Of a stretch of DNA of 64,000 nucleotides, positions 15,694 to 40,287 are shown piece after piece. The position numbers were made by a program, and so were the translations under genes. Position 1 is the stretch's first letter. Every line of letters begins with the position of its first letter. The DNA is from Utricularia gibba (Eukaryota; Plantae; Magnoliophyta), in NCBI GenBank assembly GCA_002189035.1, contig NEEC01000017.1:1550001-1614000 (forward strand). The letters are read 5' to 3'. A model generated the notes under the pieces. The model was not told the origin of the DNA and searched no databases. It worked only from the letters and a program-made list of their open reading frames with translations.

Positions 15694-17287
15694 TCAATAC
15701 ACATGGGCCTCGAGTCTGGGCTTAGGGTGCACCACCAACGGCTCCGCCCGCTGCAATGTCAGCCCATATGCTTCTTCCATATTCAACGCCTTCGCAGATT
15801 TACCACCCACGATGTCAAAATCGAACCCTTGGACCAACGTCGCTGTCAAAAGCTGCACCATTCGAATCCCTAGACTCATCCCGGCGCATATCCGCCGCCC
15901 AGCGCCGAACGGAATGATCTCAAAATCGTTGCCTCGTACATCAACTTCCGTCTTGTCGCCACCGGGAAGGAACCGTTCTGGACGGAACTCGAGCGGATCA
16001 CGCCACTGCTCCGCATCTCGAGAAATCGCCCAGACGTTCACGAGCAGCGTTGTTCCTTTTGGGATGAAGTAGCCGTTGATCTCGCAGTCCTTGTCCGCGA
16101 TTCTCGGCAGCGAGAGAGGTGTCGATGGATGGAGGCGGAAATTCTCCTTCACGATCGCTTGAAGATACGGCAGCTGCGGGAGATCTGATTCTTCGACGAG
16201 GCGATTCTTCCCGACGACGGAATCGATCTCTTTCTGCGCCTTGGATAAGATCTCCGGGTGGCGGAGGAGCTCGGCAACTGCCCATTCGACGGTGCTCGAG
16301 GTTGTGTCGGTACCGGCAGCGAAGAGATTCTGGGAAAATTATTATTAGTTGAAGTTGAATACTTTTTTTAACTGAAATAAATAATAAAGGTACCAGTAGT
16401 AACGCTTTGATTTCCGTGTCAGTAAGCTTTCCTCCCTCGGAATCATCGACATCCTTGAGGGAGATCAACGTCGAGAGAAGGTCCACGTGGCCTGTTGACG
16501 CATTAGAACCGTTGATCTTGTGATCCTCGAGAATCTTGCTCAGAAATGCATCGAAACGTCGATGAATGTTCTTCATCTTCGCTGCGACGCCCTGCAAATC
16601 TAGAGGCTCTAAGGGCGGGATGAAATCTCCGAGATTGAATATTCCGGCGGCTACCATCAGCTCCACCACCAGATTCTTGAACTCCTCAGCCTTCTTATCG
16701 CCGCCGCCGCTCTCGTGGCTCACCACGCGCCGCCCTAGCATCACGCGTGCGATCGCGTTAGTGGCGCAAACGTTCAGCATCTGGCCCAGCCTCACCGGCA
16801 CATTTCCAGCAGTAGCCAGATTCCTCGCCAGAACCCCAACCTCCTCCTGCCGGACATGGCGGAAGTCGTCGAGCGCCTTCGCGGAGAAAAGGTGGAGAGC
16901 ACAGATCTTCCGGAGGAGGCGCCACCGTGGGCCGTAAGGAGCGAAGACCAAGTCCTGGTAATTATAAGCAACGTATTTAGCTCCGGCGTTGGGCGGCCGG
17001 CTGGAGAAATTAGCATCATACGTCTTCAGAAACTGCTCCGCCACACTGCCGGAGGCAGCGACAACGACGTGTTGGAATCCCATCTTCAAGTGCATCAGCG
17101 GCCCATAAGTCTTAGCCAACTCCGCCATAGTCTGGTGGGGCTTCATCCCCAACTGCAGAATGTTCCCCAGTATCGGCCATGGCGTCGGCCCCGGGGGCAT
17201 CCGCTTTCCCCCGTGGCTGCGCCGGTTGAGGAAGGCGAATACTAGAAATATGAGCCCGACGACAACCGCAAAAGCATACATTGCCAT
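15694..17287 (-). CDS. CYP75B: Flavonoid 3'-hydroxylase CYP75B, copy 1 (canonical), 2 exons (17287-16394, 16329-15694), 509 aa
   Basis: PPGP, VVVAAS, AGTDT, ENFR/PERF, heme motif FGAGRRICAG, SRS6 AYGLTLQR; 64-nt intron. Confidence 0.95.
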
Positions 17288-23597: not shown

Positions 23598-25318
23598 TTA
23601 CGTACCTCGTCTTCTTGATGGGAAGCTGTTGCTCCATTCCAGGTACCTATGCAGGCTCCCGGTGAAGTCCGTGAAGAGTCCATCAACCTTCATCTCCTTG
23701 ATCCAGAAATCATATTCCAGGTATGGATCTTGACTGAAGTTGAAGTGCAAGAACTTATTCTCATTCCGGTACGTGTAAGGGTGCACCTGCAACCACTTGC
23801 TGTTTAACACGAATGCAGTAGCAGTAAGAAAGATGCATATGAACTGAACAAAACCTGGATACTACGAGCATGAGCTCTGGTTATGAGATCTGTGGGCTTC
23901 TGCAGATAGTTGTCTACTACAGGAGCAAGTGTATCCTTCCAGGGTCCGATCCCAACAACATAATCCTTGATGTAGTCCAGATATCCATCTGATGTGATCT
24001 CATAGAACGACTGATTCCTTGGTAATGGATTCACATCTCCTTGTTAGCATCCAGCATAACATAAGCAGAACCTAGAATTCATGCACCCACAGACAGAAAC
24101 AGCACCTGGTTTGTGTCTTGAGTTGAAATGATAATGTCGTCAATGAGGAAGATTTTGGGGAGATCAGTCAGCGTGGAAACATAAACCAGAGACGAGGGAG
24201 CAAAGGATTGGACGAAACAAGGCTGTTTCAGCCACTGCTTTGTCAAGTAAGCACCTTTGTATCCATACTTGGTGAGTGTCTCCACGAACTTATCCTCCAT
24301 TTTCTTCCCACCCGGCCATTTCACCTGCAACTTCCACCAGTCACCCGCACTGCCGCATTGTTACAGAAGGAATGAGAGACTCACATGCTGATTGATGAAC
24401 ACTGGATTCTTGATCTCTGGATAAATGCCCACAACTCGAGGAGCATCGAGAGCAATCAAGATGTACTCATCGAAGGTGATTAGAGGATACTTTCCTGCAG
24501 CAAAAACAGATCATCAGCTCCAACAGGGAGCAAGAAAGAGCATGGCCAAGCTCTGGTTTTCATCAATAAAAAAAAGTACCATTATATTGCTGATCCCGGA
24601 AAGAGTACCTCTGCTTCAGTCGCAGTGTTTTCAGTTCATCCAATGTGAAGTCAACTGCGATCAAATGCCAAACATACAGATCACAGAACATCCCTTGAGA
24701 GTCGGGAAGCAACAGAAGGTGGCAACCCACCTGTGAAAAAGCCGGTGATGTTTTCTCTTTCGACTTCATAAGTTCTTTTTCTGTCAGCAAACTCCTTGTG
24801 ATCGGCAATGTCCGTCATTGCATCAAGAGTGACATCATGGAAACATATAAGGAAGCCGTCTTTGGAGGCCAAAATATCAGACTCTATGAAATCAGCACCT
24901 TCTTCAATAGCTCTCTGCAATTCCACCCAAACACAAATGACGCTATCCACTCAAAAAGAAGAACTAAATTCGGCGTAAACAGGGATAATCACCCTGTAAG
25001 CAGGAGCTGACTCTTCAGGCATCTCCCCATTTGCACCACGGTGAGCAATGTTGTAAGGGCGAAGCGTTTGAAGCTGTTGTTTTTTACTATCGCTGGGCAG
25101 AGTGTAAGGAGCCCACAACACAACAAACAGCAGCAATAGCAGCGTCGCGAGGCCTACAGGAATTGATTTTTTCAGCTCAATCCACAATCATACCAAATTT
25201 CCAAGCCGAGCTAACTTCCCCGTAAACCCAGATCAAACAAGCATATGCAAGATCAAAAGATACCGAATTTACGCAGTTTGTTCGACACCATAGATGTGCA
25301 CTCACGGTGGAAACCCAT
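23598..25318 (-). CDS. GDPD: Secreted glycerophosphodiester phosphodiesterase (GDPD5/6-like)
   Basis: 13-nt first exon ATGGGTTTCCACC, signal peptide, RPYNIAHRGANGE, EEGADFIESD, GIYPEIKNP, VHPYTYRNE, VDGLFTDF. Confidence 0.9.
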
Positions 25319-26398: not shown

Positions 26399-28056
26399 TC
26401 ACAGTTTTAACATCTTATTTTTAACATAGAAGAAGCAAAAGGGGAGAAGGCTTACTGGGCATGGGCTGGACACATGGGCCTCGAGTCTGGGCTTTGGGTG
26501 CACCACCAACGGCTCGGCCCGGTGCAATCCTTGCCCATATGCTTCTTCCATGTTCAACTCCTTCGGTGACGTACCACCGACGATCTCAAAATTGAACCCT
26601 TGGACCAGCGTCGCCGTCAAAAACTGTACCATTCGAATCCCTAGACTCATCCCGGCGCATATCCGCCGCCCCGCGCCGAACGGAATGATCTCAAAATCGT
26701 TGCCTCGTACATCGACTTCCGCCTTGTTGCCACCGGGGAGGAACCGTTCTGGACGGAACTCGAGCGGATCGCGCCACTGCTCCGGATCTCGAGAAATCGC
26801 CCAGACGTTCACGAGCAGCGTTGTTCCTTTTGGGATGAAGTAGCCGTTGATTTCGCAGTCCTTGTCTGCGATTCTCGGTAGGGAAAGAGGTGTCGATGGA
26901 TGGAGGCGGAAATTCTCCTTCACGATCGCTTGAAGATACGGTAGTTGCGGGAGATCTGATTCTTCGACGAGGCGGTTCTTTCCGACGACGGAATCGATCT
27001 CTTTCTGCGCCTTCGATAAGATCTGCGGGTGGCGGAGGAGCTCGGAAACTGCCCACTCGACGGTGGTTGAGGTGGTGTCGGTACCGGCGACGAAGAGATT
27101 CTGAGCACATTTTTGGACTTAGTTGGCAAATACTGAAACAGGAAAATATTGAAACGTACCAGAAGCAATGCTTTGATTTGCGTGTCGGTGAGCTTTCCTC
27201 CCTCGGCATCATCAACATCTTTGAGGGAGATCAACGTCGAAAGCAGGTCCCCGTCTCGTCCCTCCGACGCATGAGAACCGGTGATCTTGTGATCTTCAAG
27301 AATCTTGCTCAGAAACGCATCGAAACGTCGATGAATGCTCTTCATCTTGGCTACGACGCCCTGCAAGTCCAGGGGCTCTAAGAGCGGGATGAAATCTCCG
27401 AGATTGAATACCCCGCCGGCTTCAAACAACTCTGTCACCAGGTTCTTGAACTCCTCGGCTTTCTTATCCCCGCCGCCACTCTCGTGGCTCACCACGCGCC
27501 GCCCTAGCATCACGCGCGCGATCCCGTTGGTGGTGCAAACGTTCAGCATCTGGCCCAGCCTCACCGGAACATTCCCAGCGGTTGCCAGGTTTCTCGCCAG
27601 AACCCCAACCTCCTCCTGCCGGACGTGGCGGAAGTCGTCGAGCGCCTTCGCGGAGAAAATGTGGAGAGCACAGATCTTCCGGAGCAGGCGCCACCGTGGA
27701 CCGTAAGGGGCGAAGACCATGTCCTGATAATTATAAGCGACGTATTTGGCTCCGGCATTGGGCGGCCGGCTGGAGAAATTGGCGTCATAGGTCTTCAAAA
27801 ACAGCTCCGCCACACTCCCAGAGGCGGCAACAACGACGTGTTGGAATCCCATCTTCAAGTGCATCAGCGGCCCGTAGGTTCTAGCCAACTCCGCCATTGT
27901 CTGGTGGGGCTTCATCCCCAGCTGCAGAATATTCCCCAGTATCGGCCATGGCGTCGGCCCCGGCGGCAGCCGCTTCCCGCCGTCGCTGCGCGGGAAGAGG
28001 AAGGCGAAGGCCACAAATATGAGCGCGAGGATGAGGGCAAAAGCTTGTGCTGTCAT
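26399..28056 (-). CDS. CYP75B: CYP75B copy 2 (divergent F3'H paralog), 2 exons (28056-27160, 27100-26399), 532 aa
   Basis: Highly similar to copy 1 with the same single intron position (59 nt) and intact heme, PERF and AGTDT motifs. SRS6 reads AYGQGLHR and the ORF has a C-terminal read-through tail. Confidence 0.92.
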
Positions 28057-28439
28057 TTTTTCCAACGTGATGAAAGACTCGAGCCACCGAGATGTTAAAT
28101 TTATTGTTCCGACCCAACTGCCATGAGTAGGGGAGGCTGTAGAGATGAGCGGCAGTTGATACCTCAATTTTTTGTAGGTGTGAATAGAAGACGCCTTTCT
28201 TAAAATAGAGAATTTGCATTTTATGTGAAAGTTAATGCATTTATTTATAAAAGAACCCACCGAGGAGCCGACACCTAGGAAGCCGAAAATATGGGTAGAC
28301 GACCTATTTATATTTATTTCTCACTAATTAAAATTAAAAATTATATTTATTTCTCACAACCAAGTCCAAGTACAACATACTATGATTTTGGATTGTCCTG
28401 CCCTATATATTTTGTATTAAAATAGGAATGATTTTAGAT

Positions 28440-28487: not shown

Positions 28488-29147
28488 TCAAGGCATTAAT
28501 TTATTTGAGAGAATTTGAATATTACTGAGGATTGCTAAGGTGTTGCTGAGGTACTCCTGCGACTTCTGCACCTCCGACTTGAGTGCACTCAGAGCCGTCG
28601 ATTTCGTCTCAGCCAATCCATCGACGCAAGTGTCCTGATCGGTCATCGCGGCGCTGATCCACGTCTTCAGATCGCCGATCTCCGCCTCCGAAGGCATCTT
28701 TTCCCCCCGGCCGACCAATTCCGCCGATTTCGCGAGGCTCTCCGCCGCGTCGTCGAGCAACTCCCTGCAATCTTGCATCGCCATCTCCGACGTCGGCGTG
28801 GATGAAATATTTTTAAGCCTGGAGACTTGGAGAGTGCCGGCGCGGAGAGAGAGCTTGAAGAAGCTCAGAGGAGTTTCAGCGGGGGGATCGTTGAGAGGAG
28901 CCATGGAGGAGAGGCAGGATTCTGGATAACGAGTGACGGCGCAGACAGTTCTGAGAGGTTCCGATTTCTCGGTCTTGGTTGCTGAATTGAAGGTTAGGGC
29001 CACGATCAGCGATACTAAGATGAGAACACTGATTGCCACGGCCAAAAACAGCCAGAAGCGGCGACGGCTCTCCGGCGGCTTCCGATCCGCGAGGTTTTCC
29101 GTTGGATTCAGTTTGCCGTAGCCTTTACCAATGTTGCGGGACTCCAT
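28488..29147 (-). CDS. PMEI/invertase-inhibitor domain protein with an N-terminal signal anchor, intronless
   Basis: GYGKL..RRR then a hydrophobic helix; LRTVCAVTRYPESC, MQDCRELLDDA, DLKTWISAAMTDQDTCVDG. Confidence 0.85.
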   Translation of the reverse strand: MESRNIGKGYGKLNPTENLADRKPPESRRRFWLFLAVAISVLILVSLIVALTFNSATKTEKSEPLRTVCAVTRYPESCLSSMAPLNDPPAETPLSFFKLSLRAGTLQVSRLKNISSTPTSEMAMQDCRELLDDAAESLAKSAELVGRGEKMPSEAEIGDLKTWISAAMTDQDTCVDGLAETKSTALSALKSEVQKSQEYLSNTLAILSNIQILSNKLMP

Positions 29148-29347: not shown

Positions 29348-30510
29348 CTAAGATGTACAACAGAGTCTAGCAAATGTTAAATAGCCAGTATGCCCTCTGG
29401 TTTCCCCGCATTTCCTAGCAACCACAGTATGAGTTTTCGAAGTTTCCTCACCATTCGTGGATCGCTGCCTCTTCTTGCAGGTTTTGAGGGTAGCCAAACC
29501 CCCATCACCATCTTCCCAGCTCCCCATACTGCTTTCTCTGACTTCATAATGGCTGAGTAGCACCTCGAACGTTCGAATGTCTGGGAAGAAGCAAAGGCAA
29601 GACATCAGGATTCGGTGTTTTGGGGATTTCGGATGAAAGGTCAGTGGAAGGAAGGCGAACAAACCTGTGAATGATGACCTTAGAGCTAAGCATGATTTCT
29701 GCACTTGCTCAATACATGGAGAGAAGGAGCAGATGACTCCATCTTGCTGCAGCATCCGTGCTGCTGAAGGAATGGCTAGCCATGGCTGTGGCAAGTCGAG
29801 GAAAACGGAGTCTGCTCGTCCTGAAAGTTCGTCTGGGAACCCCTCACCTTGTATGTCCCTCACACCTACGGTCACCAAACTGCTCAATCCACAGGTTTCG
29901 AAGTCCTCCCTGAAGAGAATGACATGAACTTGTATGATTAACATTCAACACGAATGCATAAAAACTATTTCTTTCACTTGATGAATTGTTAAAGGTGCAG
30001 CGTAACGACAATGTGATATCAGCAAGGAGCTAGAGCTGATGTCTAATTAACAAGCATCTCACCTGGCTGATGCAGCCCTTTGTTCATGGAAATCAAAAGT
30101 GTAGACATGGCCGTTTGGCGCAACGGCTCGGGCCACAGATGTAGTCAGGGATCCACTCCCAGTACCTGACTCGAGCACTACACAACCAGGAACCAATTCC
30201 AAGTACATGATAACAAAACTGATGTCGGCAATGTACAGAATCTGAGTCCTGTGGCTCAAAACAAGAGTCCACAGCTCAGGCGTGGGAGCCAATAAATACA
30301 CAAATCCACCTTTATTGCTCAAAACCTTTGATCCGAAAGGCTTCCCGATCCAATCCGAGTGCTTAAACGCACCAAATCTATTCTGCAAAACCCCATTAGC
30401 AGAAACCTTAACGGTTTCATGCAATCGTGTCTCTCGTATACTATGACCAAATCCCCCTCCGTTATTCGCCGATCAAATGACAGACACTTGGTAGGATCAC
30501 TAGGTAACAT
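29348..30510 (-). CDS. TRM61: tRNA (adenine58-N1)-methyltransferase catalytic subunit, 3 exons, with an apparent -1 frameshift at about 30413-30417
   Basis: DLVIVYERHD, SHRTQILYIADIS, VLESGTGSGSL, DSVFLDLPQPW, CSFSPCIEQV, HTGYLTFA. Confidence 0.9.
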
Positions 30511-39768: not shown

Positions 39769-40287
39769 AATAGCCCATCCTTCATCCTGGCCCAGCTATC
39801 TATCACACAGCCTGGCCCAGCCCATTGCTCCAAGGTGCAGCCCAAAATAATCCTAGTCCAGCCCTCTATTCTGTGAACTGGCTCATAACAGATTTGGGTC
39901 ATAGATGACCGGGCTGAGCTAGAAGAGACATGGGCCAGTCCACAGAATAGCCCATTCTTCAGTTGTCTGGGCCAGCCCATTTTTCCAAGGTGAAGCCCAA
40001 AGTAATCTTAGTCCAGCCCTCTATTATGTGGACTGGCCCATAAAAGATTTGGGTCATAGAAGACCTAGATGGGCTAGAAACAAAATGAGCCAGTCCAAAA
40101 AATAGAGGGCTGGACTAGGACTAATTTGGGCTAAGGCTTGGAAAAATGGGCTGGACCAGGCTGTGTGATAGCCAAGTGGGCCAGGCAACTGAAGAATGGG
40201 CTATTCTGTGGACTGGACCATGTTTCTTCTAGCCCATGGGCCAGTCCACAGAATAGAGGGCTGGACTAGGATTACTTTGGGCTGCAC
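39769..40287. repeat. Foldback array of AGCCCA/TGGGCT-rich subrepeats, two forward and two reverse (unclassified TE-derived)
   Basis: 39835-39886 vs 40236-40287 inverted, 49/52 by eye; 39927-39965 vs 40186-40224 inverted, 37/39 by eye; longer imperfect arms 39769-39889 / 40085-40204. Confidence 0.85.

Follow-up and report, generated by a model that had tools for sequence, protein, structure and literature searches.

A young CYP75B duplicate in Utricularia gibba with Thr-to-Gly at the SRS6 regiospecificity position: a candidate flavonoid B-ring hydroxylase of altered specificity

Introduction

Has a duplicated flavonoid 3'-hydroxylase (F3'H) gene in the carnivorous bladderwort Utricularia gibba kept its ancestral activity, or has its substrate pocket been rebuilt for another reaction on the flavonoid B-ring? 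The question is raised by a window of 64,000 nucleotides (the whole stretch analyzed: assembly GCA_002189035.1, contig NEEC01000017.1, positions 1,550,001 to 1,614,000 of the forward strand; coordinates below are those of the window), which contains two CYP75B genes, both with two exons, both on the minus strand and approximately 11 kb apart. The original prediction held that the second had been newly recruited as a flavonoid 5'-hydroxylase through a Thr-to-Gly change in substrate recognition site (SRS) 6, next to a canonical F3'H.

15694..17287, minus strand: copy 1 gene, canonical CYP75B F3'H (reading frames, splice sites, Pfam p450, short branch)
26399..28056, minus strand: copy 2 gene, divergent CYP75B paralogue (reading frames, Pfam p450, intron-spanning RNA contig)

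F3'H has Thr at position 8 of SRS6, where flavonoid 3',5'-hydroxylase (F3'5'H) has Ala or Ser, as the prediction had stated, and position 5 (Tyr or Phe) is a second critical site (PMC9009181 and PMC3091711, both citing Seitz et al. 2007 for position 8). Class I and class II enzymes of grasses follow a Y-x-x-T and an F-x-x-L pattern, respectively (PMC6686259). For 5'-hydroxylation, the Medicago enzymes MtFBH-4, MsFBH-4, and MsFBH-10 depend critically on a Thr-to-Gly change in SRS6, where grasses have Leu (PMC8426635). The prediction was right to place this change in Medicago CYP75B, but the enzyme it named, CYP75B138, is CcCYP2 of montbretia.

Results

Copy 2 carries Gly in the Thr column of SRS6

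15757..15759, minus strand: copy 1 Thr489 codon ACA, SRS6 position 8 (sequence and alignment column)
26519..26545, minus strand: copy 2 SRS6, E-A-Y-G-Q-G-L-H-R (sequence, alignment, DNA contig X2)
26528-26530, minus strand: copy 2 Gly490 codon GGA (sequence)

SRS6 reads E-E-A-Y-G-L-T-L-Q-R in copy 1 and E-E-A-Y-G-Q-G-L-H-R in copy 2. The codons CTG ACA TTG CAG of copy 1 are replaced by CAA GGA TTG CAC, amounting to five substitutions in four codons without any indel, and resulting in L488Q, T489G, and Q491H (copy 1 numbering). Both residues and positions are as originally described.

The two proteins were aligned with 175 full-length CYP75B homologues, one per 90%-identity cluster, drawn from Lamiales, legumes, and other eudicots. 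Copy 2 Gly490 aligns with the Thr of AYGLTLQR, confirming that the Gly occupies SRS6 position 8. This column contains Thr in 172 homologues, Lys in two, and Gly in one, the sole Gly belonging to Lathyrus sativus P0159 (AFGLGILR). The neighboring position 7 is Leu, Ile, Val, or Phe and in none of the 175 Gln, while the column of copy 1 Gln491 is Gln in nearly all. The hallmark of a canonical F3'H, Thr at position 8, is therefore present in copy 1 and absent from copy 2, although position 5 of copy 2 is Tyr, as in F3'H.

Copy 2 does not resemble the other described 5'-hydroxylating types at these positions. A CYP75A-type F3'5'H would combine Ala or Ser at position 8 and Phe at position 5 with placement in the CYP75A clade, none of which applies to copy 2; its exclusion from CYP75A rests on its best matches, all F3'H/CYP75B, as CYP75A sequences were left out of the tree described below. 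The grass A3'H/C5'H type has Leu and Phe where copy 2 has Gly and Tyr. The Thr-to-Gly change that marks the Medicago FBH-4 type is found in copy 2.

The SRS6 cluster was also considered as an unusual local density of substitutions and rejected as such, since permutations give a four-codon window with at least five differences in 93% of cases (P=0.93), and comparable clusters of differences between the copies lie at codons 1-10, 208-211, and 262-268. The SRS6 change is exceptional for which columns are struck, not for substitution density.

X2, a DNA contig produced in a different study, is identical to the window over 26528-26833, a span that includes the GGA and CAA codons and stops before CAC. 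The GGA codon, for which the original prediction had allowed a read error, is thus independently supported. The 30-nt SRS6 stretch had no exact match in a scan of JGI metagenome contigs.

Departures from conserved sites are concentrated in the substrate recognition sites

27415..27435, minus strand: copy 2 SRS2 cluster, residues 208-214, V208T, M211F, V212E, A214G (alignment of conserved sites)
27035..27091, minus strand: copy 2 I-helix/SRS4, AGTDT intact, A302V, S310T, A317S in copy 1 numbering (alignment, motif check)

At sites conserved in at least 80% of the homologues, copy 2 departs from the consensus 16 times and copy 1 three times. Nine of the 16 copy 2 departures fall within SRS ranges, which hold 20% of the conserved sites (hypergeometric p = 0.001, 0.004, and 0.001 at conservation thresholds of 0.8, 0.9, and 0.95). 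The SRS limits are generic plant-P450 numbers quoted in PMC9800874 and are approximate, but in copy 1 they enclose the expected motifs. The nine are L113M (SRS1), M211F, V212E, and A214G (SRS2), S310T and A317S (SRS4), and L488Q, T489G, and Q491H (SRS6), with V208T adjoining the SRS2 departures.

Several of these positions have changed repeatedly. Positions 178, 208, 211, 212, 214, 310, 489, and 491 are altered also in two independently divergent CYP75B paralogue lineages, a Gly type from Lathyrus and a Lys type from Orobanchaceae. The Lathyrus Gly type has five of the 16 copy 2 positions in common, including identical A214G and T489G (p=0.024). The Orobanchaceae pair, P0023 of Phtheirospermum japonicum and P0047 of Castilleja foliolosa, has seven and eight of the 16 in common (p=0.002 and 0.0008). 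Like U. gibba, these two species belong to Lamiales, and their proteins are altered at 178, 208, 211, 212, 214, 310, and 489, as is copy 2. However, they form a separate clade and carry Lys, not Gly, at SRS6 position 8, and Lys also replaces the preceding Gly (ETYKLKLQLA and ETFKLKLERA).

The pattern of change matches that predicted for pocket remodeling; decay would also strike structural and catalytic sites, which are untouched here. A similar pattern would be expected from a paralogue freed of F3'H duty but still needing to fold. The pocket-centered pattern hence argues for a changed function, but not for which function.

Catalytic motifs are intact, but the normal stop codon is lost

26651..26680, minus strand: copy 2 heme-binding motif FGAGRRICAG, intact (motif check)
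26399..26470, minus strand: copy 2 C-terminal read-through tail, 23 residues, SSPCPVSLLPFCFFYVKNKMLKL (reading frame; homology to copy 1 ends at 26470)

The PPGP, AGTDT, ExxR (ENFR), PERF, and FGAGRRICAG motifs are intact in both copies. The set that defines a P450 (heme-binding FxxGxRxCxG, ExxR, PERF, and I-helix A/G-G-x-D/E-T) is thus complete in copy 2, extending the earlier observation on its heme, PERF, and AGTDT motifs to PPGP and ExxR. The C-terminus of copy 2 differs in a way that was absent from the original prediction: its normal stop has been lost, with replacement of the Tyr-stop, and 23 extra codons (26470..26402) follow before a new TGA at 26401..26399.

Two further features of the tail were observed. 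The heptamer GCCCATG occurs twice, 13 nt apart, suggesting that a small duplication or indel eliminated the stop. The tail region (26399-26470) also contains a donor-like GTAAGC and an AATAAG.

The duplication is recent and copy 2 is evolving faster under constraint

In a maximum-likelihood protein tree, copies 1 and 2 are sisters (support 100/99), and the F3'H of Genlisea aurea is sister to the pair (100/100). As the Genlisea sequence lies outside the pair, the duplication post-dates the split from Genlisea and is internal to Lentibulariaceae. An origin independent of the legumes, as originally proposed, is upheld by this placement.

The two copies have since evolved at different rates. The protein branch of copy 2 (0.13) is about eight times longer than that of copy 1 (0.017), and an amino-acid relative-rate test counts 20 changes against four (p=0.001). 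With Genlisea DNA as outgroup, 425 codons yield 35 synonymous and eight non-synonymous changes on the copy 1 branch, and 26 and 30 on the copy 2 branch (Fisher p=4e-4). Omega is approximately 0.07 for copy 1 and 0.37 for copy 2, the latter still below neutrality (p=2e-4). Pairwise, the copies have a dS of 0.31 and a dN/dS of 0.17, and differ at about 50 residues. At this dS, copy 2 contains no frameshift or premature stop across 509 homologous codons. Copy 2 is a faster-evolving gene, yet it has never long been free of purifying selection.

Divergence is uneven along the gene. Between 26650-27050 and 15950-16280 (codons ~316-450), the copies differ by only 3-5%, versus 10% overall, and dS is 0.10-0.25, versus 0.38 in exon 1. 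This segment may be an old gene-conversion tract that ends short of SRS6. Copy 1 is otherwise conservative, with L30M and P404A (~17198-17200 and ~16012-16014; RDPEQW to RDAEQW) at columns that are 98-99% conserved.

Copy 2 is transcribed and spliced

A 56-nt contig of RNA run X8 passes directly from 27100 to 27160, with the 59-nt intron precisely removed; it is identical to copy 2 at 56 of 56 positions and differs from copy 1 at seven. Run X5, from another study, contains an exact 345-nt contig in copy 2 exon 1. The RNA check proposed with the original prediction was therefore successful in part: a spliced, copy-2-specific contig was found, but among four RNA runs no contig covers 26399-26740, which takes in the SRS6 codons, the tail, and the 3' end. 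Over 26399-26527 (the tail and the His492 codon), no independent contig of DNA or RNA was found among those compared. The shares of sampled words from the 3' part of copy 2 are low in all RNA runs.

Run X8 also contains contigs at 27020-28090 that are 96% identical to copy 2. About half of the differences carry the copy 1 (ancestral) base, identifying these contigs as a sister of copy 2, possibly an allele, the version of another strain, or a third paralogue at a different genomic locus. T208, F211, and E212 of copy 2 are present in them, together with ancestral Q85 and A214. Their codon differences from copy 2, 18 synonymous and 13 non-synonymous, are below neutrality (p=6e-5).

Gene models and genomic context

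17287..16394, minus strand: copy 1 exon 1 (reading frames, splice sites)
16330-16393, minus strand: copy 1 intron, 64 nt, GT..AG (splice sites)
16329..15694, minus strand: copy 1 exon 2, including the TGA stop (reading frames, splice sites)
28056..27160, minus strand: copy 2 exon 1 (reading frames, splice sites)
27101-27159, minus strand: copy 2 intron, 59 nt, GT..AG (splice sites, RNA contig)
27100..26399, minus strand: copy 2 exon 2, including the TGA stop (reading frames, splice sites)

Copy 1 encodes 509 amino acids and ends in ...EAHVY-stop, while the product of copy 2 is 532 amino acids long. Pfam p450 (PF00067) matches both exons in both genes, with the exon junction at profile position 267/269; the copy 2 exons score 122 bits (exon 1) and 227 bits (exon 2) against a gathering cut-off of 22.8. 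The intron position is common to both copies and the Genlisea aurea F3'H gene. Copy 2 exon 1 is 73-76% identical to canonical F3'Hs (Sesamum indicum, Salvia miltiorrhiza F3'H1), above the 55% identity to named CYP75B/F3'H proteins taken as the mark of CYP75B, and copy 2 is placed in the F3'H clade.

Self-BLAST of the window limits the similarity between the copies to the coding region (15699-17275 versus 26470-28044, 89% identity), stopping exactly at the borders of the coding sequence. No third CYP75B copy was found within the 64-kb window, and no flanking homology linking the two copies was detected. The genes between and beside them are unrelated to CYP75B:

24684-24950, minus strand: GDPD family phosphodiesterase gene (Pfam)
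28491-29147, minus strand: pectin methylesterase/invertase inhibitor (PMEI) gene (Pfam)
29351-29944, minus strand: tRNA methyltransferase subunit GCD14/TRM61 gene (Pfam)

Further along, 39769-40287 contains a cluster of short direct and inverted repeats (50-140 nt, 82-94% identity in the window self-BLAST).

Discussion

Comparison with known systems

Medicago CYP75B flavonoid B-ring hydroxylases MtFBH-4, MsFBH-4, and MsFBH-10 were reportedly characterized by Lui et al. 2020, and CYP75B-derived F3'5'H enzymes in Asteraceae are said to have been described by Seitz in 2006 and 2015. The Medicago enzymes are the closest parallel to copy 2, being CYP75B duplicates of F3'H in which SRS6 position 8 has gone from Thr to Gly and beside which a canonical Thr-type paralogue persists (PMC8426635), as copy 1 does here. 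Copy 2 is nevertheless of independent origin, in Lentibulariaceae rather than legumes, and is not a member of the legume Gly-type clade; given a duplication internal to Lentibulariaceae, the likeness is convergent. It further differs in having Leu-to-Gln at position 7, Gln-to-His at position 10, and the 23-residue C-terminal tail. The Gly-type comparison was made with Lathyrus sativus P0159 only, as searches for Medicago Gly-type sequences, starting from a legume F3'H and from P0159 and extending to the Medicago truncatula 90%-identity cluster, gave only Thr-type Medicago proteins. P0159, from a member of Fabeae, combines Gly at position 8 with the A214G also seen in copy 2, and its sequence suggests that Gly-type CYP75B enzymes extend beyond Medicago among IRLC legumes.

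The grass CYP75B4 type is likewise an F3'H paralogue with altered SRS6, SRS4 changes, and continued selection (PMC6686259), but there position 8 is Leu and position 5 Phe, against Gly and Tyr in copy 2; the grass clade is also ancient and maintained throughout the grasses, and copy 2 is young. In Asteraceae, as in the case of montbretia CcCYP2, 5'-hydroxylation arose within CYP75B and not CYP75A. According to published descriptions, F3'5'H enzymes in general carry Ala or Ser at position 8, and their residues at SRS6 position 5 and in CR1 are conserved (PMC9009181, PMC3091711). Copy 2 has Gly at position 8, and over residues 179-207, around CR1, its sequence is the same as that of copy 1. Compared to canonical eudicot F3'Hs (Sesamum indicum, Salvia miltiorrhiza F3'H1, and copy 1 itself), copy 2 retains all P450 motifs, but departs at its 16 conserved sites, nine of them in SRSs, and lacks the defining Thr. 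A recent preprint annotating U. gibba flavonoid genes names one F3'H and no F3'5'H, which fits copy 1 as a working F3'H and the presence of flavone synthesis. The nearest solved structures to CYP75 are CYP76AH1 and isoflavone synthase; a structure search did not find a solved CYP75 structure.

A candidate B-ring hydroxylase of altered specificity

The favored explanation, to which we assign a probability of roughly 0.45, is that copy 2 encodes a functional enzyme with altered specificity, a B-ring hydroxylase neofunctionalized from F3'H. That the altered activity is specifically 5'-hydroxylation, a narrower claim contained within the first, is by analogy possible but doubtful. The original prediction is supported in part: the residue, its published significance, and the independent origin stand, and selection on copy 2 has continued. 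Copy 2 would be a lineage-specific duplicate of the canonical F3'H represented by copy 1, formed in bladderworts once their lineage had separated from Genlisea, and selection would have retained it through a rebuilding of the pocket that involved SRS2, SRS4, and SRS6. Central to this rebuilding would be Thr-to-Gly at SRS6 position 8, the residue setting 3' versus 3',5' hydroxylation in CYP75. By analogy with Medicago, removal of the Thr side chain, which would hold the B-ring in a 3'-presenting pose, may make space next to the B-ring. A ring with a 3' substituent, most probably 3'-methoxylated as in chrysoeriol, could then bind in a flipped orientation that presents C5' to the heme for hydroxylation, as is reported for the Medicago CYP75B enzymes, while the SRS2 and SRS4 changes would re-shape the remainder of the pocket. 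The path from ACA to GGA takes two steps, with either Ala (GCA, the F3'5'H state) or Arg as a putative intermediate, Ala being the more plausible. The protein presumably folds with its 23-residue tail. More remote is an activity new to CYP75B, conferred by the unique Gln-Gly-Leu-His pocket.

Several observations weigh against this explanation. The Gln beside the Gly (L488Q), unseen among the homologues, could disrupt flavonoid binding; it could equally ruin such binding or direct the enzyme to another substrate. SRS6 position 5 stays Tyr, where F3'5'H and grass C5'H have Phe. The hydrophobic tail that follows the lost stop is a real risk to copy 2 function, and might impair folding or mark the onset of decay. 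The five-fold rise in omega would likewise be produced by relaxed constraint, and the SRS boundaries behind the enrichment are generic and come from a paper on another family. Expression looks weak, with no RNA contig over the SRS6 codons, although contigs show presence, not absence. A full-text search of the accessible literature found no report linking Utricularia to tricin, tricetin, myricetin, or delphinidin.

Alternative explanations

The strongest alternative, in our judgment unlikely but deserving serious attention, sees in copy 2 a redundant duplicate on its way to loss as constraint relaxes, in which case the pocket changes and the lost stop would be early decay and the protein inactive or badly impaired. 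The rise in omega relative to copy 1, the 16 departures at otherwise conserved sites, the hydrophobic read-through tail in place of the canonical stop, and the patchy, low RNA contig support, absent over 26399-26740, are all as such decay would have them. However, the omega of copy 2 remains significantly below 1, its 509 homologous codons are free of frameshifts and premature stops at a dS of 0.31, its catalytic motifs are all intact, and its intron is still correctly spliced. Its changes are concentrated in substrate recognition sites and not spread over structural sites, and the 96% identical sister sequence is likewise constrained.

Less probable again is that copy 2 has remained in essence an F3'H, with 3'-hydroxylated products only, kept for its expression pattern or dosage, with SRS6 changes that are tolerated and leave regiospecificity as it was. 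The promoters and flanks of the two copies share no detectable similarity, so their regulation must differ, and the Tyr at SRS6 position 5 is that of an F3'H. Medicago Gly-type enzymes, moreover, retain 3'-hydroxylase activity (PMC8426635). Against this, the presence of Thr at position 8 in 172 of 175 CYP75B proteins argues that F3'H function selects for Thr, nine pocket departures are hard to square with unchanged specificity, and the recurrence of such changes among other divergent paralogues speaks for a functional shift.

Assembly or sequencing errors are a very improbable source of the SRS6 difference, the missing stop, or both: although 26399-26527 (tail and His492 codon) lies outside all independent contigs compared, five substitutions without an indel are not the error type of long-read assembly, contig X2 is exact over the GGA and CAA codons, and the 10% divergence from copy 1 respects codon structure along the entire gene.

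Implications

Re-invention of 5'-hydroxylation from F3'H in four lineages (Asteraceae, grasses, Medicago, and montbretia) is a textbook setting in which to ask how far enzyme evolution repeats itself at the level of single residues. It is possible, albeit unlikely, that copy 2, viewed as the altered-specificity enzyme favored above, represents a further independent origin of a flavonoid 5'-hydroxylase within CYP75B, in a carnivorous Lamiales plant, by the same Thr-to-Gly change as in Medicago, probably via Ala, and with the recurrent pocket set 178, 208, 211, 212, 214, 310, 489, and 491. The practical gain is modest. Work on Medicago has already revealed both the residue and what it does, so the case, if true, would add an instance of repeated evolution and no new principle. 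With its unchanged parent nearby, the young duplicate (dS 0.31) offers a clean natural experiment, in which the residue differences number about 50, including the 16 departures of copy 2 at conserved sites, nine of these in the pocket. If the proposal is true, the recurrent pocket positions would constitute a reusable residue set for re-aiming CYP75B enzymes, and 3',4',5'-substituted flavones or anthocyanins would be predicted in bladderworts.

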